Notes: generated from the letters alone by a model not told the origin. 64,000 bases of DNA from Auanema rhodensis (GCA_964057225.1 OZ059897.1:16492001-16556000); one strand, 5' to 3'. Positions 35,481-62,400 are shown, numbered from the stretch's first letter. Numbers and translations are program-made.

Positions 35481-36505
<1,025 letters not shown>

Positions 36506-38639: not shown

Positions 38640-38938
38640 TTTCTCCACATCTCTTTATAACTCCAACTTTTTTTTACAATTAATCTTCGTAGTATAACTT
38701 CAACTATTGTAATGAAATTTTAATGATCATATAATCTGAACCAAGCATGAACAAAATTCACGAACTACTACTTATGCTTATATCATCAGTAGAATTTTCA
38801 AACAATCATCTTTTATAGATTCCCCAGTACCACGTACGTATAAACATACAAGTATCATGTGCGTATATACAGTTCTCTGAACAACCTAATTTCACGTACA
38901 TACCAACAAGACATTAGGCGCCAGCCGAAGACAACACT

Positions 38939-39017
38939 TTCTTCATAGTAGGACTACTGACCTCGGCAACACTTATAACTATAAGTACCACGCGCTAACC
39001 AACTGCGCCAATGGAGC
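38939..39017 (-). pseudogene. Inverted, decayed tRNA-Ile(UAU) copy
   Basis: Reverse complement of the array tRNA with an intact 5' half, but a deleted T-loop/B-box and acceptor-stem mismatches. It is flanked by degenerate spacer sequence. Confidence 0.9.
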
Positions 39018-39102
39018 CATAGACACAATCAAAAAACATTCTGAACAATCTGTTTTTCTTAGATACCAAGAAAACATAAGGCGCTGGCCAGAGCCAAAAC
39101 TT

Positions 39103-39160
39103 TGCTCCATAGCAGGATCGCACTGCTGACCTCGGCATCACTTATACTTATAAGTACCAC
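39103..39160 (-). pseudogene. Inverted 5'-truncated tRNA-Ile fragment
   Basis: Reverse complement of tRNA gene nt 27-84, with a GTTCGA>GTGCGA B-box change. Confidence 0.9.
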
Positions 39161-39184
39161 TCCGGCCGGCGCCTAACATCTTAT

Positions 39185-42100
39185 GTGATGCCGAGGTCAG
39201 CAGTTCGATCCTGCTATGGAGCAAAGTTTTGGCTCTGGCTGGCGCCTAATGTTTTCTTGGTATCTATGAAAAAACAGATTGTTCAGAATGTTTTTTGATA
39301 GTGTCTATAGCTCCATTGGCGCAGTTGGTTAGCGCGTGGTACTTATAAGTATAAGTGATGCCGAGGTCAGCAGTTCGATCCTGCTATGGAGCAAAGTTTT
39401 GGCTCTGGCTGGCGCCTAATGTTTTCTTGGTATCTATGAAAAACAGATTGTTCAGAATGTTTTTTGATTGTGTCTATAGCTCCATTGGCGCAGTTGGTTA
39501 GCGCGTGGTACTTATAAGTATAAGTGATGCCGAGGTCAGCAGTTCGATCCTGCTATGGAGCAAAGTTTTGGCTCTGGCTGGCGCCTAATGTTTTCTTGGT
39601 ATATATGAAAAACAGATTGTTCAGAATGTTTTTTGATTGTGTCTATAGCTCCATTGGCGCAGTTGGTTAGCGCGTGGTACTTATAAGTATAAGTGATGCC
39701 GAGGTCAGCAGTTCGATCCTGCTATGGAGCAAAGTTTTAGCTCCGTTCGGCGCCTAATGTTTTCTTGGTATCCATGAAAAACAGATTGTTCAGAATGTTT
39801 TTTGATTGTGTCTATAGCTCCATTGGCGCAGTTGGTTAGCGCGTGGTACTTATAAGTATAAGTGATGCCGAGGTCAGCAGTTCGATCCTGCTATGGAGCA
39901 AAGTTTTGGCTCTGGCTGGCGCCTAATGTTTTCTTGGTATCTATGAAAAACAGATTGTTCAGAATGTTTTTTGATTGTGTCTATAGCTCCATTGGCGCAG
40001 TTGGTTAGCGCGTGGTACTTATAAGTATAAGTGATGCCGAGGTCAGCAGTTCGATCCTGCTATGGAGCAAAGTTTTAGCTCCGTTCGGCGCCTAATGTTT
40101 TCTTGGTATCTATGAAAAACAGATTGTTCAGAATGTTTTTTGATTGTGTCTATAGCTCCATTGGCGTAGTTGGTTAGCGCGTGGTACTTATAAGTATAAG
40201 TGATGCCGAGGTCAGCAGTTCGATCCTGCTATGGAGCAAAGTTTTAGCTCCGTTCGGCGCCTAATGTTTTCTTGGTATCCATGAAAAACAGATTGTTCAG
40301 AATGTTTTTTGATTGTGTCTATAGCTCCATTGGCGCAGTTGGTTAGCGCGTGGTACTTATAAGTATAAGTGATGCCGAGGTCAGCAGTTCGATCCTGCTA
40401 TGGAGCAAAGTTTTGGCTCTGGCTGGCGCCTAATGTTTTCTTGGTATCTATGAAAAACAGATTGTTCAGAATGTTTTTTGATTGTGTCTATAGCTCCATT
40501 GGCGCAGTTGGTTAGCGCGTGGTAGTTATAAGTATAAGTGATGCCGAGGTCAGCAGTTCGATCCTGCTATGGAGCAAAGTTTTGGCTCTGGCTGGCGCCT
40601 AATGTTTTCTTGGTATCTATGAAAAACAGATTGTTCAGAATGTTTTTTGATAGTGTGTATAGCTCCATTGGCGCAGTTGGTTAGCGCGTGGTACTTATAA
40701 GTGTAAGTGATGCCGAGGTCAGCAGTTCGATCCTGCTATGGAGCAAAGTTTTAGCTCCGTTCGGCGCCTAATGTTTTCTTGGTATCTATGAAAAACAGAT
40801 TGTTCAGAATGTTTTTTGATTGTGTCTATAGCTCCATTGGCGCAGTTGGTTAGCGCGTGGTACTTATAAGTATAAGTGATGCCGAGGTCAGCAGTTCGAT
40901 CCTGCTATGGAGCAAAGTTTTGGCTCTGGCTGGCGCCTAATGTTTTCTTGGTATCTATGAAAAACAGATTGTTCAGAATGTTTTTTGATAGTGTGTATAG
41001 CTCCATTGGCGCAGTTGGTTAGCGCGTGGTACTTATAAGTGTAAGTGATGCCGAGGTCAGCAGTTCGATCCTGCTATGGAGCAAAGTTTTAGCTCCGTTC
41101 GGCGCCTAATGTTTTCTTGGTATCAATGAAAAACAGATTGTTCAGAATGTTTTTTGATTGTGTCTATAGCTCCATTGGCGCAGTTGGTTAGCGCGTGGTA
41201 CTTATAAGTATAAGTGATGCCGAGGTCAGCAGTTCGATCCTGCTATGGAGCAAAGTTTTGGCTCTGGCTGGCGCCTAATGTTTTCTTGGTATCTATGAAA
41301 AACAGATTGTTCAGAATGTTTTTTGATTGTGTCTATAGCTCCATTGGCGCAGTTGGTTAGCGCGTGGTACTTATAAGTATAAGTGATGCCGAGGTCAGCA
41401 GTTCGATCCTGCTATGGAGCAAAGTTTTAGCTCCGTTCGGCGTCTAATGTTTTCTTGGTATCTATGAAAAACAGATTGTTCAGAATGTTTTTTGATTGTG
41501 TCTATAGCTCCATTGGCGCAGTTGGTTAGCGCGTGGTACTTATAAGTATAAGTGATGCCGAGGTCAGCAGTTCGATCCTGCTATGGAGCAAAGTTTTGGC
41601 TCTGGCTGGCGCCTAATGTTTTCTTGGTATCTATGAAAAACAGATTGTTCAGAATGTTTTTTGATTGTGTCTATAGCTCCATTGGCGCAGTTGGTTAGCG
41701 CGTGGTACTTATAAGTATAAGTGATGCCGAGGTCAGCAGTTCGATCCTGCTATGGAGCAAAGTTTTAGCTCCGTTCGGCGCCTAATGTTTTCTTGGTATC
41801 TATGAAAAACAGATTGTTCAGAATGTTTTTTGATTGTGTCTATAGCTCCATTGGCGCAGTTGGTTAGCGCGTGGTACTTATAAGTATAAGTGATGCCGAG
41901 GTCAGCAGTTCGATCCTGCTATGGAGCAAAGTTTTGGCTCTGGCTGGCGCCTAATGTTTTCTTGGTATCTATGAAAAACAGATTGTTCAGAATGTTTTTT
42001 GATTGTGTGTATAGCTCCATTGGCGCAGTTGGTTAGCGCGTGGTACTTATAAGTATAAGTGATGCCGAGGTCAGCAGTTCGATCCTGCTATGGAGCAAAG

Positions 42101-45100
42101 TTTTGGCTCTGGCTGGCGCCTAATGTTTTCTTGGTATCTATGAAAAACAGATTGTTCAGAATGTTTTTTGATTGTGTCTATAGCTCCATTGGCGCAGTTG
42201 GTTAGAGCGTGGTACTTATAAGTATAAGTGATGCCGAGGTCAGCAGTTCGATCCTGCTATGGAGCAAAGTTTTGGCTCTGGCTGGCGCCTAATGTTTTCT
42301 TGGTATATATGAAAAACAGATTGTTCAGAATGTTTTTTGATTGTGTCTATAGCTCCATTGGCGCAGTTGGTTAGCGCGTGGTACTTATAAGTATAAGTGA
42401 TGCCGAGGTCAGCAGTTCGATCCTGCTATGGAGCAAAGTTTTGGCTCTGGCTGGCGCCTAATGTTTTCTTGGTATCTATGAAAAACAGATTGTTCAGAAT
42501 GTTTTTTGATTGTGTCTATAGCTCCATTGGCGCAGTTGGTTAGCGCGTGGTACTTATAAGTATAAGTGATGCCGAGGTCAGCAGTTCGATCCTGCTATGG
42601 AGCAAAGTTTTAGCTCCGTTCGGCGCCTAATGTTTTCTTGGTATCAATGAAAAACAGATTGTTCAGAATGTTTTTTGATTGTGTCTATAGCTCCATTGGC
42701 GCAGTTGGTTAGCGCGTGGTACTTATAAGTATAAGTGATGCCGAGGTCAGCAGTTCGATCCTGCTATGGAGCAAAGTTTTAGCTCCGTTCGGCGCCTAAT
42801 GTTTTCTTGGTATCCATGAAAAACAGATTGTTCAGAATGTTTTTTGATTGTGTCTATAGCTCCATTGGCGCAGTTGGTTAGCGCGTGGTACTTATAAGTA
42901 TAAGTGATGCCGAGGTCAGCAGTTCGATCCTGCTATGGAGCAAAGTTTTAGCTCCGTTCGGCGCCTAATGTTTTCTTGGTATCTATGAAAAACAGATTGT
43001 TCAGAATGTTTTTTGATTGTGTCTATAGCTCCATTGGCGCAGTTGGTTAGCGCGTGGTACTTATAAGTATAAGTGATGCCGAGGTCAGCAGTTCGATCCT
43101 GCTATGGAGCAAAGTTTTGGCTCTGGCTGGCGCCTAATGTTTTCTTGGTATCTATGAAAAACAGATTGTTCAGAATGTTTTTTGATTGTGTGTATAGCTC
43201 CATTGGCGCAGTTGGTTAGCGCGTGGTACTTATAAGTATAAGTGATGCCGAGGTCAGCAGTTCGATCCTGCTATGGAGCAAAGTTTTGGCTCTGGCTGGC
43301 GCCTAATGTTTTCTTGGTATCTATGAAAAACAGATTGTTCAGAATGTTTTTTGATTGTGTCTATAGCTCCATTGGCGCAGTTGGTTAGCGCGTGGTACTT
43401 ATAAGTATAAGTGATGCCGAGGTCAGCAGTTCGATCCTGCTATGGAGCAAAGTTTTGGCTCTGGCTGGCGCCTAATGTTTTCTTGGTATCTATGAAAAAC
43501 AGATTGTTCGGAATGTTTTTTGATTGTGTCTATAGCTCCATTGGCGCAGTTGGTTAGCGCGTGGTACTTATAAGTATAAGTGATGCCGAGGTCAGCAGTT
43601 CGATCCTGCTATGGAGCAAAGTTTTAGCTCCGTTCGGCGCCTAATGTTTTCTTGGTATCTATGAAAAACAGATTGTTCAGAATGTTTTTTGATTGTGTCT
43701 ATAGCTCCATTGGCGCAGTTGGTTAGCGCGTGGTACTTATAAGTATAAGTGATGCCGAGGTCAGCAGTTCGATCCTGCTATGGAGCAAAGTTTTAGCTCC
43801 GTTCGGCGCCTAATGTTTTCTTGGTATCCATGAAAAACAGATTGTTCAGAATGTTTTTTGATTGTGTCTATAGCTCCATTGGCGCAGTTGGTTAGCGCGT
43901 GGTACTTATAAGTATAAGTGATGCCGAGGTCAGCAGTTCGATCCTGCTATGGAGCAAAGTTTTAGCTCCGTTCGGCGCCTAATGTTTTCTTGGTATCTAT
44001 GAAAAACAGATTGTTCAGAATGTTTTTTGATTGTGTCTATAGCTCCATTGGCGCAGTTGGTTAGCGCGTGGTACTTATAAGTATAAGTGATGCCGAGGTC
44101 AGCAGTTCGATCCTGCTATGGAGCAAAGTTTTGGCTCTGGCTGGCGCCTAATGTTTTCTTGGTATCTATGAAAAACAGATTGTTCAGAATGTTTTTTGAT
44201 TGTGTGTATAGCTCCATTGGCGCAGTTGGTTAGCGCGTGGTACTTATAAGTATAAGTGATGCCGAGGTCAGCAGTTCGATCCTGCTATGGAGCAAAGTTT
44301 TGGCTCTGGCTGGCGCCTAATGTTTTCTTGGTATCTATGAAAAACAGATTGTTCAGAATGTTTTTTGATTGTGTCTATAGCTCCATTGGCGCAGTTGGTT
44401 AGAGCGTGGTACTTATAAGTATAAGTGATGCCGAGGTCAGCAGTTCGATCCTGCTATGGAGCAAAGTTTTGGCTCTGGCTGGCGCCTAATGTTTTCTTGG
44501 TATATATGAAAAACAGATTGTTCAGAATGTTTTTTGATTGTGTCTATAGCTCCATTGGCGCAGTTGGTTAGCGCGTGGTACTTATAAGTATAAGTGATGC
44601 CGAGGTCAGCAGTTCGATCCTGCTATGGAGCAAAGTTTTGGCTCTGGCTGGCGCCTAATGTTTTCTTGGTATCTATGAAAAACAGATTGTTCAGAATGTT
44701 TTTTGATTGTGTCTATAGCTCCATTGGCGCAGTTGGTTAGCGCGTGGTACTTATAAGTATAAGTGATGCCGAGGTCAGCAGTTCGATCCTGCTATGGAGC
44801 AAAGTTTTAGCTCCGTTCGGCGCCTAATGTTTTCTTGGTATCAATGAAAAACAGATTGTTCAGAATGTTTTTTGATTGTGTCTATAGCTCCATTGGCGCA
44901 GTTGGTTAGCGCGTGGTACTTATAAGTATAAGTGATGCCGAGGTCAGCAGTTCGATCCTGCTATGGAGCAAAGTTTTAGCTCCGTTCGGCGCCTAATGTT
45001 TTCTTGGTATCCATGAAAAACAGATTGTTCAGAATGTTTTTTGATTGTGTCTATAGCTCCATTGGCGCAGTTGGTTAGCGCGTGGTACTTATAAGTATAA

Positions 45101-47818
45101 GTGATGCCGAGGTCAGCAGTTCGATCCTGCTATGGAGCAAAGTTTTAGCTCCGTTCGGCGCCTAATGTTTTCTTGGTATCTATGAAAAACAGATTGTTCA
45201 GAATGTTTTTTGATTGTGTCTATAGCTCCATTGGCGCAGTTGGTTAGCGCGTGGTACTTATAAGTATAAGTGATGCCGAGGTCAGCAGTTCGATCCTGCT
45301 ATGGAGCAAAGTTTTGGCTCTGGCTGGCGCCTAATGTTTTCTTGGTATCTATGAAAAACAGATTGTTCAGAATGTTTTTTGATTGTGTGTATAGCTCCAT
45401 TGGCGCAGTTGGTTAGCGCGTGGTACTTATAAGTATAAGTGATGCCGAGGTCAGCAGTTCGATCCTGCTATGGAGCAAAGTTTTGGCTCTGGCTGGCGCC
45501 TAATGTTTTCTTGGTATCTATGAAAAACAGATTGTTCAGAATGTTTTTTGATTGTGTCTATAGCTCCATTGGCGCAGTTGGTTAGAGCGTGGTACTTATA
45601 AGTATAAGTGATGCCGAGGTCAGCAGTTCGATCCTGCTATGGAGCAAAGTTTTGGCTCTGGCTGGCGCCTAATGTTTTCTTGGTATATATGAAAAACAGA
45701 TTGTTCAGAATGTTTTTTGATTGTGTCTATAGCTCCATTGGCGCAGTTGGTTAGCGCGTGGTACTTATAAGTATAAGTGATGCCGAGGTCAGCAGTTCGA
45801 TCCTGCTATGGAGCAAAGTTTTGGCTCTGGCTGGCGCCTAATGTTTTCTTGGTATCTATGAAAAACAGATTGTTCAGAATGTTTTTTGATTGTGTCTATA
45901 GCTCCATTGGCGCAGTTGGTTAGCGCGTGGTACTTATAAGTATAAGTGATGCCGAGGTCAGCAGTTCGATCCTGCTATGGAGCAAAGTTTTAGCTCCGTT
46001 CGGCGCCTAATGTTTTCTTGGTATCAATGAAAAACAGATTGTTCAGAATGTTTTTTGATTGTGTCTATAGCTCCATTGGCGCAGTTGGTTAGCGCGTGGT
46101 ACTTATAAGTATAAGTGATGCCGAGGTCAGCAGTTCGATCCTGCTATGGAGCAAAGTTTTAGCTCCGTTCGGCGCCTAATGTTTTCTTGGTATCCATGAA
46201 AAACAGATTGTTCAGAATGTTTTTTGATTGTGTCTATAGCTCCATTGGCGCAGTTGGTTAGCGCGTGGTACTTATAAGTATAAGTGATGCCGAGGTCAGC
46301 AGTTCGATCCTGCTATGGAGCAAAGTTTTAGCTCCGTTCGGCGCCTAATGTTTTCTTGGTATCTATGAAAAACAGATTGTTCAGAATGTTTTTTGATTGT
46401 GTCTATAGCTCCATTGGCGCAGTTGGTTAGCGCGTGGTACTTATAAGTATAAGTGATGCCGAGGTCAGCAGTTCGATCCTGCTATGGAGCAAAGTTTTGG
46501 CTCTGGCTGGCGCCTAATGTTTTCTTGGTATCTATGAAAAACAGATTGTTCAGAATGTTTTTTGATTGTGTCTATAGCTCCATTGGCGCAGTTGGTTAGC
46601 GCGTGGTACTTATAAGTATAAGTGATGCCGAGGTCAGCAGTTCGATCCTGCTATGGAGCAAAGTTTTGGCTCTGGCTGGCGCCTAATGTTTTCTTGGTAT
46701 CTATGAAAAACAGATTGTTCAGAATGTTTTTTGATTGTGTGTATAGCTCCATTGGCGCAGTTGGTTAGCGCGTGGTACTTATAAGTATAAGTGATGCCGA
46801 GGTCAGCAGTTCGATCCTGCTATGGAGCAAAGTTTTGGCTCGGGCTGGCGCCTAATGTTTTCTTGGTATCTATGAAAAACAGATTGTTCAGAATGTTTTT
46901 TGATTGTGTGTATAGCTCCATTGGCGCAGTTGGTTAGCGCGTGGTACTTATAAGTATAAGTGATGCCGAGGTCAGCAGTTCGATCCTGCTATGGAGCAAA
47001 GTTTTGGCTCGGGCTGGCGCCTAATGTTTTCTTGGTATCTATGAAAAACAGATTGTTCAGAATGTTTTTTGATTGTGTGTATAGCTCCATTGGCGCAGTT
47101 GGTTAGCGCGTGGTACTTATAAGTATAAGTGATGCCGAGGTCAGCAGTTCGATCCTGCTATGGAGCAAAGTTTTGGCTCGGGCTGGCGCCTAATGTTTTC
47201 TTGGTATCTATGAAAAACAGATTGTTCAGAATGTTTTTTGATTGTGTCTATAGCTCCATTGGCGCAGTTGGTTAGCGCGTGGTACTTATAAGTATAAGTG
47301 ATGCCGAGGTCAGCAGTTCGATCCTGCTATGGAGCAAAGTTTTAGCTCGGGCTGGCGCCTAATGTTTTCTTGGTATCCATGAAAAACAGATTGTTCAGAA
47401 TGTTTTTTGATTGTGTCTATAGCTCCATTGGCGCAGTTGGTTAGCGCGTGGTACTTATAAGTATAAGTGATGCCGAGGTCAGCAGTTCGATCCTGCTATG
47501 GAGCAAAGTTTTAGCTCCGTTCGGCGCCTAATGTTTTCTTGGCATCAATGAAAAACAGATTGTTCAGAATGTTTTTTGATTGTGTCTATAGCTCCATTGG
47601 CGCAGTTGGTTAGCGCGTGGTACTTATAAGTATAAGTGATGCCGAGGTCAGCAGTTCGATCCTGCTATGGAGCAAAGTTCTAGCTCCGTTCGGCGCCTAA
47701 TGTTTTCTTGGTATCCATGAAAAACAGATTGTTCAGAATGTTTTTTGATTGTGTCTATAGCTCCATTGGCGCAGTTGGTTAGCGCGTGGTACTTATAAGT
47801 ATAAGTGATGCCGAGGTC
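39185..47818 (+). repeat. Tandem tRNA-Ile(UAU) array, left block: 169-bp unit, 50 complete genes plus truncated end copies
   Basis: tRNA starts at 39310+169n up to 47760 (exactly 50 periods). The copy at 47760 is cut after GAGGTC. Confidence 0.98.
39310..39393 (+). tRNA. tRNA-Ile-TAT: tRNA-Ile(UAU) with 10-nt intron; first complete copy, repeated every 169 bp
   Basis: GCTCCAT/ATGGAGC acceptor stem, GCGC/GCGC D-stem, TGGTA/TGCCG anticodon stem, CT-TAT-A loop, intron AGTATAAGTG after position 37, AGCAG/CTGCT T-stem with TTCGATC loop, discriminator A, and a TTTT terminator 3 nt downstream. Confidence 0.96.
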
Positions 47819-49160
47819 CGTTCCATTCGGACTCCCCATATATGTAGCTGAAGGGTTAGAGCCAGACGACCAGAGGACCGAGGAATGGCTCCGCCTTCCC
47901 TCGTTCCCTTGGTCGGGAGTTCGCCTCTTAGCAAGCTCATGGACGGCTTGTAGTTTAGTCTTTATACTTATATTTATCTTATTGTATTGTATCTTTATCT
48001 TTGTATATTATTGTTGTAGTTTCATGCTAATAAATCTTTCTCTCTTTTATCTTATGATTGACCTTATGCTCTTTATTCCTTACCGCTACACCAAGGAATA
48101 CTATGCGCGTCATAGTATAAACTACAATGGTTTATATTATCGACGCAGGAGCATAACGGAACGTGGAGGTTCCACCTCGAACTCATCTTTTGAAAAAAAA
48201 AATTTTCTTTTTATTGTAAAAGTCCATTTTTGCATTCTAAATTATAAATTCCTCCACTTGAAACAACAAAATGAAGGCGCCAATTTGTTTTAAGGTACAG
48301 ATACAAGGGATCTCGCTTAAATGCGAGATAGGACCAATAAAAATTTTGCCCGCTGTCCTCAATTAAAACCGTCTGAATGTCCACCCTTTTCTATATCGTA
48401 TCTTGTACCGCTTCTCATGCCATTTTGAGGACGTTTGGATTGAAATAGAGGACAATTTCGCCAAACGAGAAAATATAGTTGTTCACATTTTTTTTTGGGG
48501 GCATAGAGAAGTTTGATTATTGGAACAAAAATTTATAAGACGCGCGCAATTGATTATAGTTTGTATATTTTGTGGTCAGGACTAGAATTTTGAAATTATT
48601 ATATTCAGACGTAAAAGATCATTTTACATATTATTTTGCGGGAAACCAAAAACGGTTACATAAATTGAATATAAAAAGAGACCACACTAGTCCGAAAAAG
48701 CCTGGTAAATCTGCAATAAGACTTCTCAGCTCTTATTTGACAGTCAGGTCAAGTTGGCGGAAGCATAACTGCTACGGATTTTATCCCCGTAGATTATGTC
48801 ACCTTCCTCAAATCATTTCGTTGTTTCAACTCATAAGATACCCCTTATCTCCTACAGTAATCCTAAGTAAATTGGAAATGTTTAAAAATAGACGTATTTT
48901 TCTCATTTTCAAAAAGAAATTCGCTTAGGAAAACGCACTTTTGCTTATTTTGATCGAGAAAAGGGACAGCCTTTTCAATAACTCTCCTCAAACCTCATTA
49001 GCATGCACAATGTCGAAAACATTTTGAGCAAAACATGCTATTTAAGGAAAAAGGAATGAGGAAAAGATTGAAAACATAAGTCCATTTTCTTGACGAAAAC
49101 AGAGCAAAGCGCATAAAAAAAAAAAATAAAAAAAAAAAACAGAGTACAAGCTTTATTCAG

Positions 49161-49683
49161 TCAAAAACCCCACTTGAAAGCTAGCTGTCTTTCAAACTCT
49201 GCAGCAAGAGAGATAGGCTCGTAACTGGGGGAGAGGTATTCGGGATACTCTCTCCCCAGTGAGGTCCTCAGCTGCAATCCAAGCGATGAGCTATCATAAC
49301 ATACATGCATTTTAAACAAAATTTTACATAATAATTCATAGAATAAAGGCTGCCTCTCGGTATACCATCTCCAGGGACTTCCTACAAGTCCACACAGGAG
49401 AGCGGCATAAAAATGCGCGCACAGGTCACGGAGACAGAGACGCCCTACGAGCTCAATCTCGGGCGCAATTTCCGCCATAGCGGAAAAATTAACGAGGCCC
49501 CTGCCCAAATAGAACATTTGCAGATCCTCAATAAACTAAAATAGAAAAAAGAAAATACTGAAAATTGAAATTGACTAATGCACCAACCATTAATATTATA
49601 TCAGGATGGGGCCTATAAGCCAATCTCTCTTCAGCATCATAAAAGACAATAACGTCATACAGCTTTTGCATGACAAAGGTCAT
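49161..49683 (-). CDS. Orphan two-exon gene (~156 aa) in the inserted unit, copy 1
   Basis: Exon 49683-49588 (MTFVMQKLYDVIVFYDAEERLAYRPHPDIILM), a 52-bp GT-AG intron, and exon 49535-49161 (FIEDLQMFYLGRG...AFKWGF). AATAAA lies a few bases after the stop, followed by a T-tract. GC content is elevated. Confidence 0.6.
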
Positions 49684-52384
49684 TCCAGTAGGCTAGACGC
49701 TCATTTTTAAGAATTCTTAGCTCTCAAAAATAATAAAATCTAGCTTGGTAAACAAGAGAAAAAAGGGGGACAAAAACATGATTGAAAGCTACTAGTGAAG
49801 AGAGAAATTAAAGGAAGTACAAGCGGAAAGTGCAAGAGCGGATAAAAAAAAAAAGTTTTTGAGAAGAGATAAACACCATTAACTATAATAAGCTTACGGT
49901 AGATAGGCGGAGTCAGATTGTTGGCCAAGATTTGGAAAACTCCCTCTCATTTACCCTCCGCATCGCCCAGCAAAGCATGACTATCCTATTGCTCCCGAAT
50001 CTTTCTCTCTCCCAACACACATCTAAAAGAATCTTACGCACCTTACGTCAACATCCCACACGTAGCTCACCATTCTCGGTTTTTCCAAACCAAGAGTCCT
50101 ATAAAGGTGGCCAAAAGATTCTCATCGGCTTTCCGAGCCCTTTACCCGTCCGATACCAACAGTGACGCTACTGTCGCAAGTCGTCGCAGAAGCCGTACCC
50201 GACTTCTTAGTGTTCAAATAGAAAAACTGCACCAACCAGCCGAGAAGCCGAAGCCGCAAGTCGACCAGTTTTATACTCCCCGAGAAGGAACATATTCACC
50301 TTCTGACGACACCTACGAAGATCCGGACTTCATCATAGCCGACGACAGAAAAAATTTTTATATACATTCTTTTCTTTTCTGTAGATTGTAAAATGAAAGT
50401 AACGGTGAATTAGAAAAATTTTGATGAGAGATTAAGAGAATAAACAACCAAAAATAAGGAATAAGTGAAAATATAATATAAATAATAGGCTACCGTACTC
50501 CTTTACGACGATAGAGATAGTCTATCGCACTAAATTGAGCTCCATATGTATCTCCAAGAAGAGACGAAAATTGGCAGGCGCCTAAGCCACACCCCATCTG
50601 AGTGGTAGCCTCCATTAGTACTCAAGGATTCATTCAGAGAGACACATGAAGACGAAAACAATTAATAACTAAAAATCTTTATCCCCATCATCATTAGGAT
50701 ACGAGTAACCATGCACGCAAAAAGTTGAATAATTCCTTATTATCTCACATAAATCTCAAATTCATGGAACAATTTTTTTTATTACAGTACTACAATGACT
50801 AAATTTATTTTTCTAATCCTCCGTTACAAAATAACATAAAACCTATTATTGTATTCAAATTCTATCTTAATACCATAAAGAAACCTATTAAAACTATTTA
50901 TATATCTTTCTACATGTAGATTTTAAAACTTTTAATTTTATTTGTAAACTCCTAGACTCTAAAACTCAGCTACATATACACTAAAAACACTTTATATCGC
51001 GCGGACGCGAAAAATCTTTGAAAAAGGGCACGTTCCATTCGGACTCCCCATATATGTAGCTGAAGGGTTAGAGCCAGACGACCAGAGGACCGAGGAATGG
51101 CTCCGCCTTCCCTCGTTCCCTTGGTCGGGAGTTCGCCTCTTAGCAAGCTCATGGACGGCTTGTAGTTTAGTCTTTATACTTATATTTATCTTATTGTATT
51201 GTATCTTTATCTTTGTATATTATTGTTGTAGTTTCATGCTAATAAATCTTTCTCTCTTTTATCTTATGATTGACCTTATGCTCTTTATTCCTTACCGCTA
51301 CACCAAGGAATACTATGCGCGTCATAGTATAAACTACAATGGTTTATATTATCGACGCAGGAGCATAACGGAACGTGGAGGTTCCACCTCGAACTCATCT
51401 TTTGAAAAAAAAAATTTTCTTTTTATTGTAAAAGTCCATTTTTGCATTCTAAATTATAAATTCCTCCACTTGAAACAACAAAATGAAGGCGCCAATTTGT
51501 TTTAAGGTACAGATACAAGGGATCTCGCTTAAATGCGAGATAGGACCAATAAAAATTTTGCCCGCTGTCCTCAATTAAAACCGTCTGAATGTCCACCCTT
51601 TTCTATATCGTATCTTGTACCGCTTCTCATGCCATTTTGAGGACGTTTGGATTGAAATAGAGGACAATTTCGCCAAACGAGAAAATATAGTTGTTCACAT
51701 TTTTTTTTGGGGGCATAGAGAAGTTTGATTATTGGAACAAAAATTTATAAGACGCGCGCAATTGATTATAGTTTGTATATTTTGTGGTCAGGACTAGAAT
51801 TTTGAAATTATTATATTCAGACGTAAAAGATCATTTTACATATTATTTTGCGGGAAACCAAAAACGGTTACATAAATTGAATATAAAAAGAGACCACACT
51901 AGTCCGAAAAAGCCTGGTAAATCTGCAATAAGACTTCTCAGCTCTTATTTGACAGTCAGGTCAAGTTGGCGGAAGCATAACTGCTACGGATTTTATCCCC
52001 GTAGATTATGTCACCTTCCTCAAATCATTTCGTTGTTTCAACTCATAAGATACCCCTTATCTCCTACAGTAATCCTAAGTAAATTGGAAATGTTTAAAAA
52101 TAGACGTATTTTTCTCATTTTCAAAAAGAAATTCGCTTAGGAAAACGCACTTTTGCTTATTTTGATCGAGAAAAGGGACAGCCTTTTCAATAACTCTCCT
52201 CAAACCTCATTAGCATGCACAATGTCGAAAACATTTTGAGCAAAACATGCTATTTAAGGAAAAAGGAATGAGGAAAAGATTGAAAACATAAGTCCATTTT
52301 CTTGACGAAAACAGAGCAAAGCGCATAAAAAAAAAAAATAAAAAAAAAAAAAAAAAAAAAAAACAGAGTACAAGCTTTATTCAG

Positions 52385-52907
52385 TCAAAAACCCCACTTG
52401 AAAGCTAGCTGTCTTTCAAACTCTGCAGCAAGAGAGATAGGCTCGTAACTGGGGGAGAGGTAATCGGGATACTCTCTCCCCAGTGAGGTCCTCAGCTGCA
52501 ATCCAAGCGAAGAGCTATCATAACATACATGCATTTTAAACAAAATTTTACATAATAATTCATAGAATAAAGGCTGCCTCTCGGTATACCATCTCCAGGG
52601 ACTTCCTACAAGTCCACACAGGAGAGCGGCATAAAAATGCGCGCACAGGTCACGGAGACAGAGACGCCCTACGAGCTCAATCTCGGGCGCAATTTCCGCC
52701 ATAGCGGAAAAATTAACGAGGCCCCTGCCCAAATAGAACATTTGCAGATCCTCAATAAACTAAAATAGAAAAAAGAAAATACTGAAAATTGAAATTGACT
52801 AATGCACCAACCATTAATATTATATCAGGATGGGGCCTATAAGCCAATCTCTCTTCAGCATCATAAAAGACAATAACGTCATACAGCTTTTGCATGACAA
52901 AGGTCAT
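52385..52907 (-). CDS. Orphan two-exon gene, copy 2
   Basis: Same as copy 1, with one E>D and one synonymous difference. Confidence 0.55.
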
Positions 52908-53418
52908 TCCAGTAGGCTAGACGCTCATTTTTAAGAATTCTTAGCTCTCAAAAATAATAAAATCTAGCTTGGTAAACAAGAGAAAAAAGGGGGACAAAAA
53001 CATGATTGAAAGCTACTAGTGAAGAGAGAAATTAAAGGAAGTACAAGCGGAAAGTGCAAGAGCGGATAAAAAAAAAAAGTTTTTGAGAAGAGATAAACAC
53101 CATTAACTATAATAAGCTTACGGTAGATAGGCGGAGTCAGATTGTTGGCCAAGATTTGGAAAACTCCCTCTCATTTACCCTCCGCATCGCCCAGCAAAGC
53201 ATGACTATCCTATTGCTCCCGAATCTTTCTCTCTCCCAACACACATCTAAAAGAATCTTACGCACCTTACGTCAACATCCCACACGTAGCTCACCATTCT
53301 CGGTTTTTCCAAACCAAGAGTCCTATAAAGGTGGCCAAAAGATTCTCATCGGCTTTCCGAGCCCTTTACCCGTCCGATAACAACAGTGACGCTACTGTCG
53401 CAAGTCGTCGCAGAAGCC

Positions 53419-56400
53419 TTGTTCAGAATGTTTTTTGATTGTGTCTATAGCTCCATTGGCGCAGTTGGTTAGCGCGTGGTACTTATAAGTATAAGTGATG
53501 CCGAGGTCAGCAGTTCGATCCTGCTATGGAGCAAAGTTTTGGCTCTGGCTGGCGCCTAATGTTTTCTTGGTATCTATGAAAAACAGATTGTTCAGAATGT
53601 TTTTTGATTGTGTCTATAGCTCCATTGGCGCAGTTGGTTAGCGCGTGGTACTTATAAGTATAAGTGATGCCGAGGTCAGCAGTTCGATCCTGCTATGGAG
53701 CAAAGTTTTGGCTCTGGCTGGCGCCTAATGTTTTCTTGGTATCTATGAAAAACAGATTGTTCAGAATGTTTTTTGATTGTGTGTATAGCTCCATTGGCGC
53801 AGTTGGTTAGCGCGTGGTACTTATAAGTATAAGTGATGCCGAGGTCAGCAGTTCGATCCTGCTATGGAGCAAAGTTTTGGCTCGGGCTGGCGCCTAATGT
53901 TTTCTTGGTATCTATGAAAAACAGATTGTTCAGAATGTTTTTTGATTGTGTGTATAGCTCCATTGGCGCAGTTGGTTAGCGCGTGGTACTTATAAGTATA
54001 AGTGATGCCGAGGTCAGCAGTTCGATCATGCTATGGAGCAAAGTTTTGGCTCTGGCTGGCGCCTAATGTTTTCTTGGTATCTATGAAAAACAGATTGTTC
54101 AGAATGTTTTTTGATTGTGTCTATAGCTCCATTGGCGCAGTTGGTTAGCGCGTGGTACTTATAAGTATAAGTGATGCCGAGGTCAGCAGTTCGATCCTGC
54201 TATGGAGCAAAGTTTTGGCTCTGGCTGGCGCCTAATGTTTTCTTGGTATCTATGAAAAACAGATTGTTCAGAATGTTTTTTGATTGTGTGTATAGCTCCA
54301 TTGGCGCAGTTGGTTAGCGCGTGGTCCTTATAAGTATAAGTGATGCCGAGGTCAGCAGTTCGATCCTGCTATGGAGCAAAGTTTTGGCTCGGGCTGGCGC
54401 CTAATGTTTTCTTGGTATCTATGAAAAACAGATTGTTCAGTATGTTTTTTGATTGTGTCTATAGCTCCATTGGCGCAGTTGGTTAGCGCGTGGTACTTAT
54501 AAGTATAAGTGATGCCGAGGTCAGCAGTTCGATCCTGCTATGGAGCAAAGTTTTAGCTCGGTTCGGCGCCTAATGTTTTCTTGGTATCTATGAAAAACAG
54601 ATTGTTCAGAATGTTTTTTGATTGTGTCTATAGCTCCATTGGCGCAGTTGGTTAGCGCGTGGTACTTATAAGTATAAGTGATGCCGAGGTCAGCAGTTCG
54701 ATCCTGCTATGGAGCAAAGTTTTGGCTCTGGCTGGCGCCTAATGTTTTCTTGGTATCTATGAAAAACAGATTGTTCAGAATGTTTTTTGATTGTGTGTAT
54801 AGCTCCATTGGCGCAGTTGGTTAGCGCGTGGTACTTATAAGTATAAGTGATGCCGAGGTCAGCAGTTCGATCCTGCTATGGAGCAAAGTTTTGGCTCGGG
54901 CTGGCGCCTAATGTTTTCTTGGTATCTATGAAAAACAGATTGTTCAGAATGTTTTTTGATTGTGTGTATAGCTCCATTGGCGCAGTTGGTTAGCGCGTGG
55001 TACTTATAAGTATAAGTGATGCCGAGGTCAGCAGTTCGATCATGCTGTGGAGCAAAGTTTTGGCTCTGGCTGGCGCCTAATGTTTTCTTGGTATCTATGA
55101 AAAACAGATTGTTCAGAATGTTTTTTGATTGTGTGTATAGCTCCATTGGCGCAGTTGGTTAGCGCGTGGTCCTTATAAGTATAAGTGATGCCGAGGTCAG
55201 CAGTTCGATCCTGCTATGGAGCAAAGTTTTGGCTCGGGCTGGCGCCTAATGTTTTCTTGGTATCTATGAAAAACAGATTGTTCAGAATGTTTTTTGATTG
55301 TGTCTATAGCTCCATTGGCGCAGTTGGTTAGCGCGTGGTACTTATAAGTATAAGTGATGCCGAGGTCAGCAGTTCGATCCTGCTGTGGAGCAAAGTTTTG
55401 GCTCTGGCTGGCGCCTAATGTTTTCTTGGTATCTATGAAAAACAGATTGTTCAGAATGTTTTTTGATTGTGTCTATAGCTCCATTGGCGCAGTTGGTTAG
55501 CGCGTGGTACTTATAAGTATAAGTGATGCCGAGGTCAGCAGTTCGATCCTGCTATGGAGCAAAGTTTTGGCTCTGGCTGGCGCCTAATGTTTTCTTGGTA
55601 TCTATGAAAAACAGATTGTTCAGAATGTTTTTTGATTGTGTGTATAGCTCCATTGGCGCAGTTGGTTAGCGCGTGGTCCTTATAAGTATAAGTGATGCCG
55701 AGGTCAGCAGTTCGATCCTGCTATGGAGCAAAGTTTTGGCTCGGGCTGGCGCCTAATGTTTTCTTGGTATCTATGAAAAACAGATTGTTCAGAATGTTTT
55801 TTGATTGTGTCTATAGCTCCATTGGCGCAGTTGGTTAGCGCGTGGTACTTATAAGTATAAGTGATGCCGAGGTCAGCAGTTCGATCCTGCTATGGAGCAA
55901 AGTTTTGGCTCTGGCTGGCGCCTAATGTTTTCTTGGTATCTATGAAAAACAGATTGTTCAGAATGTTTTTTGATTGTGTCTATAGCTCCATTGGCGTAGT
56001 TGGTTAGCGCGTGGTACTTATAAGTATAAGTGATGCCGAGGTCAGCAGTTCGATCCTGCTATGGAGCAAAGTTTTAGCTCCGTTCGGCGCCTAATGTTTT
56101 CTTGGTATCCATGAAAAACAGATTGTTCAGAATGTTTTTTGATTGTGTCTATAGCTCCATTGGCGCAGTTGGTTAGCGCGTGGTACTTATAAGTATAAGT
56201 GATGCCGAGGTCAGCAGTTCGATCCTGCTATGGAGCAAAGTTTTGGCTCTGGCTGGCGCCTAATGTTTTCTTGGTATCTATGAAAAACAGATTGTTCAGA
56301 ATGTTTTTTGATTGTGTCTATAGCTCCATTGGCGCAGTTGGTTAGCGCGTGGTACTTATAAGTATAAGTGATGCCGAGGTCAGCAGTTCGATCCTGCTAT

Positions 56401-59400
56401 GGAGCAAAGTTTTGGCTCTGGCTGGCGCCTAATGTTTTCTTGGTATCTATGAAAAACAGATTGTTCAGAATGTTTTTTGATTGTGTGTATAGCTCCATTG
56501 GCGCAGTTGGTTAGCGCGTGGTACTTATAAGTATAAGTGATGCCGAGGTCAGCAGTTCGATCCTGCTATGGAGCAAAGTTTTGGCTCGGGCTGGCGCCTA
56601 ATGTTTTCTTGGTATCTATGAAAAACAGATTGTTCAGAATGTTTTTTGATTGTGTGTATAGCTCCATTGGCGCAGTTGGTTAGCGCGTGGTACTTATAAG
56701 TATAAGTGATGCCGAGGTCAGCAGTTCGATCCTGCTATGGAGCAAAGTTTCGGCTCTGGCTGGCGCCTAATGTTTTCTTGGTATCTATGAAAAACAGATT
56801 GTTCAGAATGTTTTTTGATTGTGTGTATAGCTCCATTGGCGCAGTTGGTTAGCGCGTGGTCCTTATAAGTATAAGTGATGCCGAGGTCAGCAGTTCGATC
56901 CTGCTATGGAGCAAAGTTTTGGCTCTGGCTGGCGCCTAATGTTTTCTTGGTATCTATGAAAAACAGATTGTTCAGAATGTTTTTTGATTGTGTCTATAGC
57001 TCCATTGGCGTAGTTGGTTAGCGCGTGGTACTTATAAGTATAAGTGATGCCGAGGTCAGCAGTTCGATCCTGCTATGGAGCAAAGTTTTAGCTCTGGCTG
57101 GCGCCTAATGTTTTCTTGGTATCTATGAAAAACAGATTGTTCAGAATGTTTTTTGATTGTGTCTATAGCTCCATTGGCGCAGTTGGTTAGCGCGTGGTAC
57201 TTATAAGTATAAGTGATGCCGAGGTCAGCAGTTCGATCCTGCTATGGAGCAAAGTTTTGGCTCTGGCTGGCGCCTAATGTTTTCTTGGTATCTATGAAAA
57301 ACAGATTGTTCAGAATGTTTTTTGATTGTGTGTATAGCTCCATTGGCGCAGTTGGTTAGCGCGTGGTCCTTATAAGTATAAGTGATGCCGAGGTCAGCAG
57401 TTCGATCCTGCTATGGAGCAAAGTTTTGGCTCTGGCTGGCGCCTAATGTTTTCTTGGTATCTATGAAAAACAGATTGTTCAGAATGTTTTTTGATTGTGT
57501 GTATAGCTCCATTGGCGCAGTTGGTTAGCGCGTGGTACTTATAAGTATAAGTGATGCCGAGGTCAGCAGTTCGATCCTGCTATGGAGCAAAGTTTTGGCT
57601 CTGGCTGGCGCCTAATGTTTTCTTGGTATCTATGAAAAACAGATTGTTCAGAATGTTTTTTGATTGTGTGTATAGCTCCATTGGCGCAGTTGGTTAGCGC
57701 GTGGTACTTATAAGTATAAGTGATGCCGAGGTCAGCAGTTCGATCCTGCTATGGAGCAAAGTTTTGGCTCGGGCTGGCGCCTAATGTTTTCTTGGTATCT
57801 ATGAAAAACAGATTGTTCAGAATGTTTTTTGATTGTGTGTATAGCTCCATTGGCGCAGTTGGTTAGCGCGTGGTCCTTATAAGTATAAGTGATGCCGAGG
57901 TCAGCAGTTCGATCCTGCTATGGAGCAAAGTTTTGGCTCGGGCTGGCGCCTAATGTTTTCTTGGTATCTATGAAAAACAGATTGTTCAGAATGTTTTTTG
58001 ATTGTGTCTATAGCTCCATTGGCGCAGTTGGTTAGCGCGTGGTACTTATAAGTATAAGTGATGCCGAGGTCAGCAGTTCGATCCTGCTATGGAGCAAAGT
58101 TTTGGCTCTGGCTGGCGCCTAATGTTTTCTTGGTATCTATGAAAAACAGATTGTTCAGAATGTTTTTTGATTGTGTCTATAGCTCCATTGGCGTAGTTGG
58201 TTAGCGCGTGGTACTTATAAGTATAAGTGATGCCGAGGTCAGCAGTTCGATCCTGCTATGGAGCAAAGTTTTAGCTCCGTTCGGCGCCTAATGTTTTCTT
58301 GGTATCCATGAAAAACAGATTGTTCAGAATGTTTTTTGATTGTGTCTATAGCTCCATTGGCGCAGTTGGTTAGCGCGTGGTACTTATAAGTATAAGTGAT
58401 GCCGAGGTCAGCAGTTCGATCCTGCTATGGAGCAAAGTTTTGGCTCTGGCTGGTGCCTAATGTTTTCTTGGTATCTATGAAAAACAGATTGTTCAGAATG
58501 TTTTTTGATTGTGTCTATAGCTCCATTGGCGCAGTTGGTTAGCGCGTGGTACTTATAAGTATAAGTGATGCCGAGGTCAGCAGTTCGATCCTGCTATGGA
58601 GCAAAGTTTTAGCTCCGTTCGGCGCCTAATGTTTTCTTGGTATCCATGAAAAACAGATTGTTCAGAATGTTTTTTGATTGTGTCTATAGCTCCATTGGCG
58701 CAGTTGGTTAGCGCGTGGTACTTATAAGTATAAGTGATGCCGAGGTCAGCAGTTCGATCCTGCTATGGAGCAAAGTTTTGGCTCTGGCTGGCGCCTAATG
58801 TTTTCTTGGTATCTATGAAAAACAGATTGTTCAGAATGTTTTTTGATTGTGTCTATAGCTCCATTGGCGCAGTTGGTTAGCGCGTGGTACTTATAAGTAT
58901 AAGTGATGCCGAGGTCAGCAGTTCGATCCTGCTATGGAGCAAAGTTTTGGCTCTGGCTGGCGCCTAATGTTTTCTTGGTATCTATGAAAAACAGATTGTT
59001 CAGAATGTTTTTTGATTGTGTGTATAGCTCCATTGGCGCAGTTGGTTAGCGCGTGGTACTTATAAGTATAAGTGATGCCGAGGTCAGCAGTTCGATCCTG
59101 CTATGGAGCAAAGTTTTGGCTCGGGCTGGCGCCTAATGTTTTCTTGGTATCTATGAAAAACAGATTGTTCAGAATGTTTTTTGATTGTGTGTATAGCTCC
59201 ATTGGCGCAGTTGGTTAGCGCGTGGTCCTTATAAGTATAAGTGATGCCGAGGTCAGCAGTTCGATCCTGCTATGGAGCAAAGTTTTGGCTCGGGCTGGCG
59301 CCTAATGTTTTCTTGGTATCTATGAAAAACAGATTGTTCAGAATGTTTTTTGATTGTGTCTATAGCTCCATTGGCGCAGTTGGTTAGCGCGTGGTACTTA

Positions 59401-62400
59401 TAAGTATAAGTGATGCCGAGGTCAGCAGTTCGATCCTGCTATGGAGCAAAGTTTTGGCTCTGGCTGGCGCCTAATGTTTTCTTGGTATCTATGAAAAACA
59501 GATTGTTCAGAATGTTTTTTGATTGTGTCTATAGCTCCATTGGCGTAGTTGGTTAGCGCGTGGTACTTATAAGTATAAGTGATGCCGAGGTCAGCAGTTC
59601 GATCCTGCTATGGAGCAAAGTTTTAGCTCCGTTCGGCGCCTAATGTTTTCTTGGTATCCATGAAAAACAGATTGTTCAGAATGTTTTTTGATTGTGTCTA
59701 TAGCTCCATTGGCGCAGTTGGTTAGCGCGTGGTACTTATAAGTATAAGTGATGCCGAGGTCAGCAGTTCGATCCTGCTATGGAGCAAAGTTTTGGCTCTG
59801 GCTGGCGCCTAATGTTTTCTTGGTATCTATGAAAAACAGATTGTTCAGAATGTTTTTTGATTGTGTCTATAGCTCCATTGGCGCAGTTGGTTAGCGCGTG
59901 GTACTTATAAGTATAAGTGATGCCGAGGTCAGCAGTTCGATCCTGCTATGGAGCAAAGTTTTGGCTCTGGCTGGCGCCTAATGTTTTCTTGGTATCTATG
60001 AAAAACAGATTGTTCAGAATGTTTTTTGATTGTGTGTATAGCTCCATTGGCGCAGTTGGTTAGCGCGTGGTACTTATAAGTATAAGTGATGCCGAGGTCA
60101 GCAGTTCGATCCTGCTATGGAGCAAAGTTTTGGCTCGGGCTGGCGCCTAATGTTTTCTTGGTATCTATGAAAAACAGATTGTTCAGAATGTTTTTTGATT
60201 GTGTGTATAGCTCCATTGGCGCAGTTGGTTAGCGCGTGGTACTTATAAGTATAAGTGATGCCGAGGTCAGCAGTTCGATCCTGCTATGGAGCAAAGTTTC
60301 GGCTCTGGCTGGCGCCTAATGTTTTCTTGGTATCTATGAAAAACAGATTGTTCAGAATGTTTTTTGATTGTGTGTATAGCTCCATTGGCGCAGTTGGTTA
60401 GCGCGTGGTCCTTATAAGTATAAGTGATGCCGAGGTCAGCAGTTCGATCCTGCTATGGAGCAAAGTTTTGGCTCTGGCTGGCGCCTAATGTTTTCTTGGT
60501 ATCTATGAAAAACAGATTGTTCAGAATGTTTTTTGATTGTGTCTATAGCTCCATTGGCGTAGTTGGTTAGCGCGTGGTACTTATAAGTATAAGTGATGCC
60601 GAGGTCAGCAGTTCGATCCTGCTATGGAGCAAAGTTTTAGCTCTGGCTGGCGCCTAATGTTTTCTTGGTATCTATGAAAAACAGATTGTTCAGAATGTTT
60701 TTTGATTGTGTCTATAGCTCCATTGGCGCAGTTGGTTAGCGCGTGGTACTTATAAGTATAAGTGATGCCGAGGTCAGCAGTTCGATCCTGCTATGGAGCA
60801 AAGTTTTGGCTCTGGCTGGCGCCTAATGTTTTCTTGGTATCTATGAAAAACAGATTGTTCAGAATGTTTTTTGATTGTGTGTATAGCTCCATTGGCGCAG
60901 TTGGTTAGCGCGTGGTCCTTATAAGTATAAGTGATGCCGAGGTCAGCAGTTCGATCCTGCTATGGAGCAAAGTTTTGGCTCTGGCTGGCGCCTAATGTTT
61001 TCTTGGTATCTATGAAAAACAGATTGTTCAGAATGTTTTTTGATTGTGTGTATAGCTCCATTGGCGCAGTTGGTTAGCGCGTGGTACTTATAAGTATAAG
61101 TGATGCCGAGGTCAGCAGTTCGATCCTGCTATGGAGCAAAGTTTTGGCTCTGGCTGGCGCCTAATGTTTTCTTGGTATCTATGAAAAACAGATTGTTCAG
61201 AATGTTTTTTGATTGTGTGTATAGCTCCATTGGCGCAGTTGGTTAGCGCGTGGTACTTATAAGTATAAGTGATGCCGAGGTCAGCAGTTCGATCCTGCTA
61301 TGGAGCAAAGTTTTGGCTCGGGCTGGCGCCTAATGTTTTCTTGGTATCTATGAAAAACAGATTGTTCAGAATGTTTTTTGATTGTGTGTATAGCTCCATT
61401 GGCGCAGTTGGTTAGCGCGTGGTCCTTATAAGTATAAGTGATGCCGAGGTCAGCAGTTCGATCCTGCTATGGAGCAAAGTTTTGGCTCGGGCTGGCGCCT
61501 AATGTTTTCTTGGTATCTATGAAAAACAGATTGTTCAGAATGTTTTTTGATTGTGTCTATAGCTCCATTGGCGCAGTTGGTTAGCGCGTGGTACTTATAA
61601 GTATAAGTGATGCCGAGGTCAGCAGTTCGATCCTGCTATGGAGCAAAGTTTTGGCTCTGGCTGGCGCCTAATGTTTTCTTGGTATCTATGAAAAACAGAT
61701 TGTTCAGAATGTTTTTTGATTGTGTCTATAGCTCCATTGGCGTAGTTGGTTAGCGCGTGGTACTTATAAGTATAAGTGATGCCGAGGTCAGCAGTTCGAT
61801 CCTGCTATGGAGCAAAGTTTTAGCTCCGTTCGGCGCCTAATGTTTTCTTGGTATCCATGAAAAACAGATTGTTCAGAATGTTTTTTGATTGTGTCTATAG
61901 CTCCATTGGCGCAGTTGGTTAGCGCGTGGTACTTATAAGTATAAGTGATGCCGAGGTCAGCAGTTCGATCCTGCTATGGAGCAAAGTTTTGGCTCTGGCT
62001 GGTGCCTAATGTTTTCTTGGTATCTATGAAAAACAGATTGTTCAGAATGTTTTTTGATTGTGTCTATAGCTCCATTGGCGCAGTTGGTTAGCGCGTGGTA
62101 CTTATAAGTATAAGTGATGCCGAGGTCAGCAGTTCGATCCTGCTATGGAGCAAAGTTTTAGCTCCGTTCGGCGCCTAATGTTTTCTTGGTATCCATGAAA
62201 AACAGATTGTTCAGAATGTTTTTTGATTGTGTCTATAGCTCCATTGGCGCAGTTGGTTAGCGCGTGGTACTTATAAGTATAAGTGATGCCGAGGTCAGCA
62301 GTTCGATCCTGCTATGGAGCAAAGTTTTGGCTCTGGCTGGCGCCTAATGTTTTCTTGGTATCTATGAAAAACAGATTGTTCAGAATGTTTTTTGATTGTG

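Follow-up and report, generated by a model that had tools for sequence, protein, structure and literature searches.

A greater-than-unit-length, gene-bearing block interrupts a tRNA-Ile array in Auanema rhodensis

What is the 5.6-kb block that interrupts a long array of tRNA genes in the nematode Auanema rhodensis, and how did it come to lie there? We addressed this question in a single window, the whole stretch of 64,000 nucleotides that was analysed (GCA_964057225.1 OZ059897.1:16492001-16556000), to whose first letter all coordinates refer. The block occupies positions 47819-53418 (5600 bp) and is the sole interruption in more than 24 kb of tandem tRNA-Ile genes. We propose, with a probability of roughly one half, that it is a fragment of tandemly duplicated or concatemeric, possibly circle-derived, host DNA that was taken up where the array had broken, through blunt end joining. 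An earlier note on this DNA had suggested a captured concatemer of a small episome, of a virus-like or non-autonomous element, or a piece of a second tandem repeat. Capture of a concatemer, or of part of a second tandem repeat, is still the best reading of the block, whose ends look arbitrary and which has none of the hallmarks of known transposons or retroelements.

Self-comparison resolved the insert into the order A-B-A'. Arm A (47819-50194, 2376 bp, unit positions 1-2376) is followed by the single-copy, AT-rich core B (50195-51030, 836 bp), and A plus B make up a unit of 3212 bp. Arm A' (51031-53418, 2388 bp) then repeats A with 99.4% identity, so that the insert holds 1.74 units (5600/3212) arranged head-to-tail. 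In the alignment of the two arms (2388 columns, 99.37% identity) we counted three mismatches, all of them transversions, at 49239, 49287 and 50156, and one 12-nt gap. The gap arises because a homopolymer run, which closely follows the gene described below and consists of A on the plus strand and T on the strand of the gene, is 25 nt long in the first copy (49115-49139) and 37 nt long in the second (52327-52363); the spacing between A and A' is accordingly 3212 bp to the left of the run and 3224 bp to its right. Both the period of 3212 bp with about 1.74 nearly identical copies and the greater-than-unit-length, head-to-tail placement inside the tRNA array, as described in the earlier note, are borne out by this layout. 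No diverged copies of the unit were found in the other 39 kb of the window.

The unit had been taken for unclassified, coding-poor DNA, a description that overlooked an intact spliced gene on its minus strand. All the nematode-type splice signals of the unit lie on this strand, in a window with about 30% G+C and introns of roughly 50 nt. The first gene copy (49161-49683, minus strand) has two exons and 156 codons. Exon 1 (49683-49588) begins with ATG and supplies 32 codons, the GT..AG intron (49587-49536) is 52 nt long, and exon 2 (49535-49164) adds 124 codons directly after a TTTTAG acceptor, with the stop codon at 49163-49161. An AATAAA signal at 49157 starts two bases past the stop and is followed by a run of T. 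The second copy (52385-52907, minus strand) has the same structure at an offset of +3224, and is likewise intact; two changes set it apart from the first, one of them synonymous and the other Glu to Asp.

Searched exhaustively with HMMER, a set of 1.84 billion representative proteins contained exactly one convincing relative of this gene, the 125-residue protein P0001, which is 56% identical over its full length (E 4e-34). We dismissed as spurious a second, weak match, in which 49 residues were 24% identical to the 3764-residue protein P0002 (E 1e-3). P0001 is encoded on a 1035-bp contig (L001) from sequencing run SRR31646600, which is collinear with the minus strand of the window from 50123 to 49115 and shares with it a first exon with ATG, the position of the intron, the second exon, an AATAAA just past the stop and the T-run. 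The corresponding plus-strand poly-A tract is no retroposition tail: it is the T-run behind the poly(A) signal of the gene, and it occupies the same place in the contig. Exact look-ups with both exon-2 variants and with two open reading frames (ORFs) near a triosephosphate isomerase gene of the window found no record in the contig collection; because the ORFs of the window are absent from it, the collection seems not to include the genome of the window, and the contig most likely comes from a different species.

Differences between the two genes are distributed 41/39/80 over the three codon positions (153 aligned codons), with a dN/dS of 0.22 and a dS of about 1.5. Judged from this codon pattern, the two-exon gene of the unit is protein-coding and under purifying selection. 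Word-index protein searches with the exon-2 ORF, P0001 and a junction-spanning ORF yielded nothing beyond P0001, and P0001 itself had no further kin by this search. Searched one exon at a time, the protein had no relative in Pfam, in PHROGs or, by profile search, in the PDB, and an AlphaFold model of exon 2 from the two-sequence alignment was too poor for use (pLDDT 43.7).

The contig also aligns with the region upstream of the gene (49890-50098, minus strand), where two non-coding blocks stand out; the same blocks recur at +3224 in the second copy. At 50041-50098 and 49890-49920 the unit is 86-87% identical to contig positions of about 27-84 and 207-237, as compared with 58% for the whole upstream region and 63-70% for the coding exons, while neutral or synonymous sites are saturated. 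The blocks match no Rfam family and are probably regulatory. From an intact spliced gene, purifying selection and conserved upstream blocks common to another organism, it follows that about 1 kb of the unit behaves as ordinary host gene DNA.

We then asked how the block meets its host. The left break falls after 47818, that is, after nucleotide 59 of the 84-nt tRNA copy that begins at 47760, between the variable loop and the T-arm, which leaves a truncated tRNA copy without its T-arm and 3' acceptor strand. The array picks up again at 53419 in the phase of 47729, and the 90 bp at 47729-47818 (plus strand) are identical to those at 53419-53508. Because the array is periodic, this can be described either as a duplication of 90 bp of flank or as a loss of 79 bp modulo 169 (plus or minus whole units), the two being interchangeable. 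The 79-bp loss put forward in the earlier note agrees with this, and the 90-bp duplication fits equally well. The insert starts with CGTTCC and finishes with GAAGCC; to its left the host reads ..GAGGTC and to its right TTGTTC.., which makes C and T the host bases at the junctions. Direct reading of the junctions agreed with the earlier claim that the insert ends lack TG..CA, terminal inverted repeats and a short target-site duplication, the 90-bp array overlap being the only flank repeat there. When the expected continuation of the array was compared with the circular neighbour of the unit, microhomology amounted to zero bases at both junctions. A search brought up no inverted repeat of at least 30 nt, nor is there one at the ends of the insert. 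A tRNA-like T-arm hairpin at the left junction was regarded as a coincidence, as it requires three bases of the array and is absent at the internal junction. The view that the outer ends are arbitrary cut points is supported by their position inside the unit and by the failure to match any element terminus.

The host array itself fills the right 25 kb of the window. The tRNA gene in each of its 169-bp units is 84 nt long, has a short intron and carries the anticodon UAU, which identifies it as tRNA-Ile(UAU). From 39310 to the end of the window ARAGORN predicted 112 copies, spaced by exactly 169 bp, and the Rfam tRNA model scored eight array copies near the insert at 40-51 bits (seven of the eight at 50.6). 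More than 110 tandem copies of an intron-containing tRNA-Ile(UAU) (39310-64000) is an unusually large number for a normally low-copy isoacceptor; the literature that we searched had nothing relevant on nematode tRNA arrays, or on sequencing run SRR31646600. The left block (39182-47818, plus strand) ends in the truncated copy (47760-47818, first 59 of 84 nt), and the right block (53419-64000, plus strand) continues past the window end. The left edge of the array is irregular, with about 1.4 units inverted at roughly 38900-39160; these face the forward array head-to-head at about 39160-39185, some 300 bp past the stop codon (38638) of a plus-strand gene.

Marking the variant columns against a majority reference of the 169-bp unit revealed higher-order patterns that differ on the two sides of the insert. 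The variants have a period of 7 or 13 units in the left block (39310-47674) and of about 21 units in the right block (53450-63842). An anticodon-stem variant (tRNA position 32, A to C), which marks the copies that ARAGORN calls tRNA-Ile(tat), is confined to the right of the insert, and one pair of unit variants is confined to the left. Since the variant patterns differ across it, the insert divides the array into two domains that have been homogenised independently.

These patterns also bear on the trivial explanation that the block is an assembly artefact, a chimeric or over-expanded consensus in an array that is hard to assemble. It is true that long homogeneous arrays are error-prone in assembly and that one of the differences between A and A' is a homopolymer length. 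Against this, two junctions in the same orientation and nearly in phase would both need to be chimeric, three transversions separate A from A', and the variant patterns of the array change across the insert. We therefore regard an artefact as very improbable: the variant patterns and the substitutions between the arms argue against an assembler duplication, and for an insertion that is genuine and not brand-new.

Considering all the above results, the block shows what captured tandem DNA would be recognised by, namely a non-integer number of units, arbitrary ends, no target-site duplication and a small loss or gain at the target. We propose the following course of events. A gene-bearing stretch of about 3.2 kb, with its promoter-proximal elements and poly(A) signal, would have existed elsewhere in at least two head-to-tail copies, arising from a chromosomal tandem duplication or from a circle of excised host DNA, present as a multimer or as a rolling copy. 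A double-strand break would then have opened one of the tRNA-Ile genes of the array. Into this break a linear piece of 5.6 kb, cut at arbitrary points and 1.74 units long, may have been end-joined without homology, with the loss of 79 bp or the gain of 90 bp that is observed at the junctions. Thereafter the arms would have gained the three substitutions and the homopolymer length change now seen between them, and the flanking arrays would have been homogenised separately, which could account for their present differences. Because tandem duplication in place would give two full units and not 1.74, the periodic donor most likely existed before the insertion. Since both gene copies are intact, the event would also have duplicated and relocated a functional-looking gene.

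The host-like character of the gene could also be explained without any insertion. The small gene may always have lain beside tRNA-Ile genes, with arrays growing on both sides of it and a local rearrangement copying A past B. A gene that resembles a normal host gene under purifying selection would be at home in such a locus, no other copy of the unit is visible in the window, and the opposite boundary of the array is irregular as well (the inverted units at 38900-39160), which points to a history of rearrangement. The two array blocks, however, run in the same direction and have unit variants in common, and their phases agree with one array that was split with the loss of 79 bp or the gain of 90 bp. 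The left boundary falls partway through a tRNA gene, and a simple tandem duplication in place again predicts two full units rather than 1.74. We consider a native locus unlikely, although by no means negligible.

The opposite possibility is that the block belongs to an unclassified mobile element, which integrated more than one unit from a circular intermediate or by rolling-circle copying, preferred tRNA genes, and carried the 156-codon gene as its own or as cargo. The greater-than-unit length, the absence of a target-site duplication, the location inside a tRNA gene, and a gene of no known function with almost no relatives would all suit such an element, as would a structured region at the unit junction. 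This stretch (50956-51127), which spans the boundary between B and A', contains an inverted repeat of 13 bp if perfect and about 23 bp if imperfect pairing is counted, with arms at 50956-50978 and 51051-51073 and a 72-nt spacer. The perfect 13 bp pair 50966-50978 with 51051-51063, and a further copy of the arm lies at 47839-47851. The 190 nt around the junction fold much better than shuffled sequences (z = -3.5), which is mildly suggestive. By itself the perfect core carries no significance, as 23 of 200 random sequences of matched composition also contained a perfect 13-mer inverted repeat. The earlier note had the apparent boundaries cutting through an ORF and this inverted-repeat pair. Both exist, and the unit boundary indeed lies between the repeat arms; on the other hand, nothing supports the ORF (50107-50391, GTG start, 94 codons) as coding, and the perfect core of the repeat is within chance. 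A separate GC-rich imperfect hairpin with arms of about 20 bp occurs at 47867-47915 and 51079-51127, in AT-rich surroundings about 50 nt in from the left edge of A and of A'.

Searches for the machinery of such an element were uniformly negative. Among 65 stop-to-stop frames of at least 30 residues we detected no reverse transcriptase, integrase, transposase, recombinase or Rep domain (best Pfam E 0.055), in agreement with the earlier failure to recognise a reverse transcriptase, integrase, transposase, tyrosine recombinase or HUH-Rep motif, and for the seven largest frames, too, Pfam gave nothing above chance level. Helicases gave no signal in any frame either. Rfam, run on the unit and on the related contig at the gathering score and with E values of up to 5-10, returned only the array tRNAs and noise. 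A mobile element also has to contend with the junctions, where zero shared bases stand against the identical core needed for conservative site-specific recombination, and where the host bases are C and T instead of the A and T expected of a Helitron. Neither a 5' TC nor a 3' CTRR with a hairpin occurs at an end, and a dedicated scan for Helitron ends found no CTRR-TC site at an insert end. The inverted-repeat core is within chance, as noted, and we see one interruption in an array of more than 24 kb and no copy elsewhere in the window. A mobile element of this general kind is, in our view, quite unlikely. Its most specific form, in which the unit would be an undescribed gene-carrying nematode element, circular or concatemeric, that enters tRNA genes without conventional transposon ends and uses the orphan protein and the conserved upstream and junction structures as functional parts, appears highly doubtful.

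The individual classes of known elements fit no better. Helitrons, which are common in nematodes, resemble the insert in lacking a target-site duplication, in their possible tandem copies and in gene capture, but the insert has neither 5' TC nor 3' CTRR hairpin ends, does not lie between A and T, and encodes no Rep/helicase; the last point is not decisive alone, since non-autonomous Helitron copies do without this protein. Tyrosine-recombinase elements (DIRS/PAT, Crypton), of which PAT was first described in a nematode, share with the insert the absence of a target-site duplication and could supply a circular intermediate. The insert nevertheless contains no recombinase or reverse transcriptase, is a plain tandem of 1.74 units in place of split direct repeats or inverted termini, and has no core common to both junctions. 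It differs from DNA transposons with terminal inverted repeats by the absence of such repeats and of a target-site duplication of fixed length, the 13-bp inverted repeat (47839, 50966) being internal and at chance level (23/200).

An alternative already raised in the earlier note is that of two 2.4-kb direct repeats around a 0.84-kb core, which would make the block a non-autonomous element resembling a long terminal repeat (LTR) retrotransposon, of the LARD or TRIM type, with A and A' as terminal repeats and B as internal region. The layout is indeed of this form, as in LTR retrotransposons and their non-autonomous derivatives: two long direct repeats of high identity (99.4%) flank a core, a stretch rich in purines directly precedes A', and near the end of A the plus strand has a TATA-like motif. 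The hallmarks themselves fail. The arms begin with CG and finish with CC, not TG..CA; there is no target-site duplication of 4-6 bp, no polypurine tract and no remnant of gag or pol; and no primer-binding site complementary to a tRNA is present, as B starts with GTACCC on the plus and TGCCCT on the minus strand. Moreover, an entire spliced gene, together with a poly(A) signal of its own, is found within each arm, and another species has it conserved in the same arrangement. We therefore attribute only a very slight probability to an LTR-like element.

The virus-like or episomal flavour of the earlier interpretation did not survive. A unit of 3.2 kb in a head-to-tail layout of greater than unit length is the only feature that would recall an integrated small circular DNA virus, of hepadnavirus size or of the CRESS type. 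No polymerase, Rep, capsid or other viral or replication protein domain was detected in the 65 frames, PHROGs gave no match, and four scans of IMG/VR were negative. In particular, exact 22-24-mers of the unit, including a 24-mer common to the related contig, were absent from IMG/VR and from JGI metagenomes, and the exon-2 alignment, used as a protein pattern, found nothing in IMG/VR or in GTDB genomes. The only coding feature is a spliced gene of nematode style with its 52-nt intron. At the available sensitivity a small DNA virus is effectively refuted, and we give it next to no credence. A mitochondrial origin was tried as well: under the invertebrate mitochondrial code (table 5) the unit has no ORF longer than 165 codons and no match to mitochondrial gene families, and we rejected a nuclear copy of mitochondrial DNA in the absence of long ORFs.

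Several observations weigh against the capture of host DNA at a break. Neither a donor locus nor a second copy of the unit was seen in the one 64-kb window, and nothing in the sequence points directly to a stage as a circle or to rolling-circle copying. The stretch collinear with the related contig accounts for the characterised part of the unit and leaves about 2.2 kb (47819-49114 and 50124-51030) outside it. In unit coordinates, the left end of the block (47819) falls within the spacer of the inverted repeat, and a cut point in this hairpin-prone region could be a hint that the break was specific and not random. Finally, blunt joins are unusual beside the germline repair reported for C. elegans, in which polymerase-theta-mediated joining typically involves at least 1 nt of microhomology.

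Systems that resemble the proposed capture of tandem host DNA in part are known. Nematode germlines tend to concatenate extrachromosomal DNA. Chromosome-derived extrachromosomal circular DNA is documented in C. elegans (PMC5633380). Such circles and germline concatenation are a possible source of permuted, multimeric host DNA without element ends, although a circle stage is something that we only infer here. In the Drosophila simulans clade, an Rsp-like satellite has inserted into clusters of the 1.688 satellite, and end joining and the reintegration of circular DNA were proposed as routes (PMC7403614). The likeness lies in head-to-tail repeats within an older array, truncated monomers at the junctions, and small deletions or duplications of the host array. 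The present insert differs from these satellites in its 3.2-kb gene-bearing unit, its 1.74 units, its junctions without microhomology, its tRNA host array, and in that one event is visible.

Apart from the insert and the array, the window contains an exon of triosephosphate isomerase at 35722-36090 on the plus strand (Pfam E 4.7e-24), which is interrupted in frame by an intron of 45 nt. Among solved structures its best relative is PDB 1mo0, which we take to be the Caenorhabditis elegans triosephosphate isomerase. This exon, the G+C content and the short introns mark the host as a nematode, probably a rhabditid. A weak match to a BAR-domain exon at 31894-32238 on the minus strand (E 4.6e-05) is below the Pfam cut-off.

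Altogether, on the reading that we favour, the block is a structural insertion and not a machine. It represents an instance of an already known kind of event, to which it adds a conserved orphan gene in a host-like unit. No long-standing question is opened by it, and its importance would rise only with repeated, end-defined insertions across the genome. Our analysis also draws attention to a nematode gene that is lineage-restricted and whose upstream elements are unusually well conserved. If the block was captured as we propose, it would provide a clean and datable case of a functional-looking gene that was duplicated and moved into a tRNA array as a concatemer, and would show by example how foreign DNA enters tandem arrays, which are then split into independently evolving halves.

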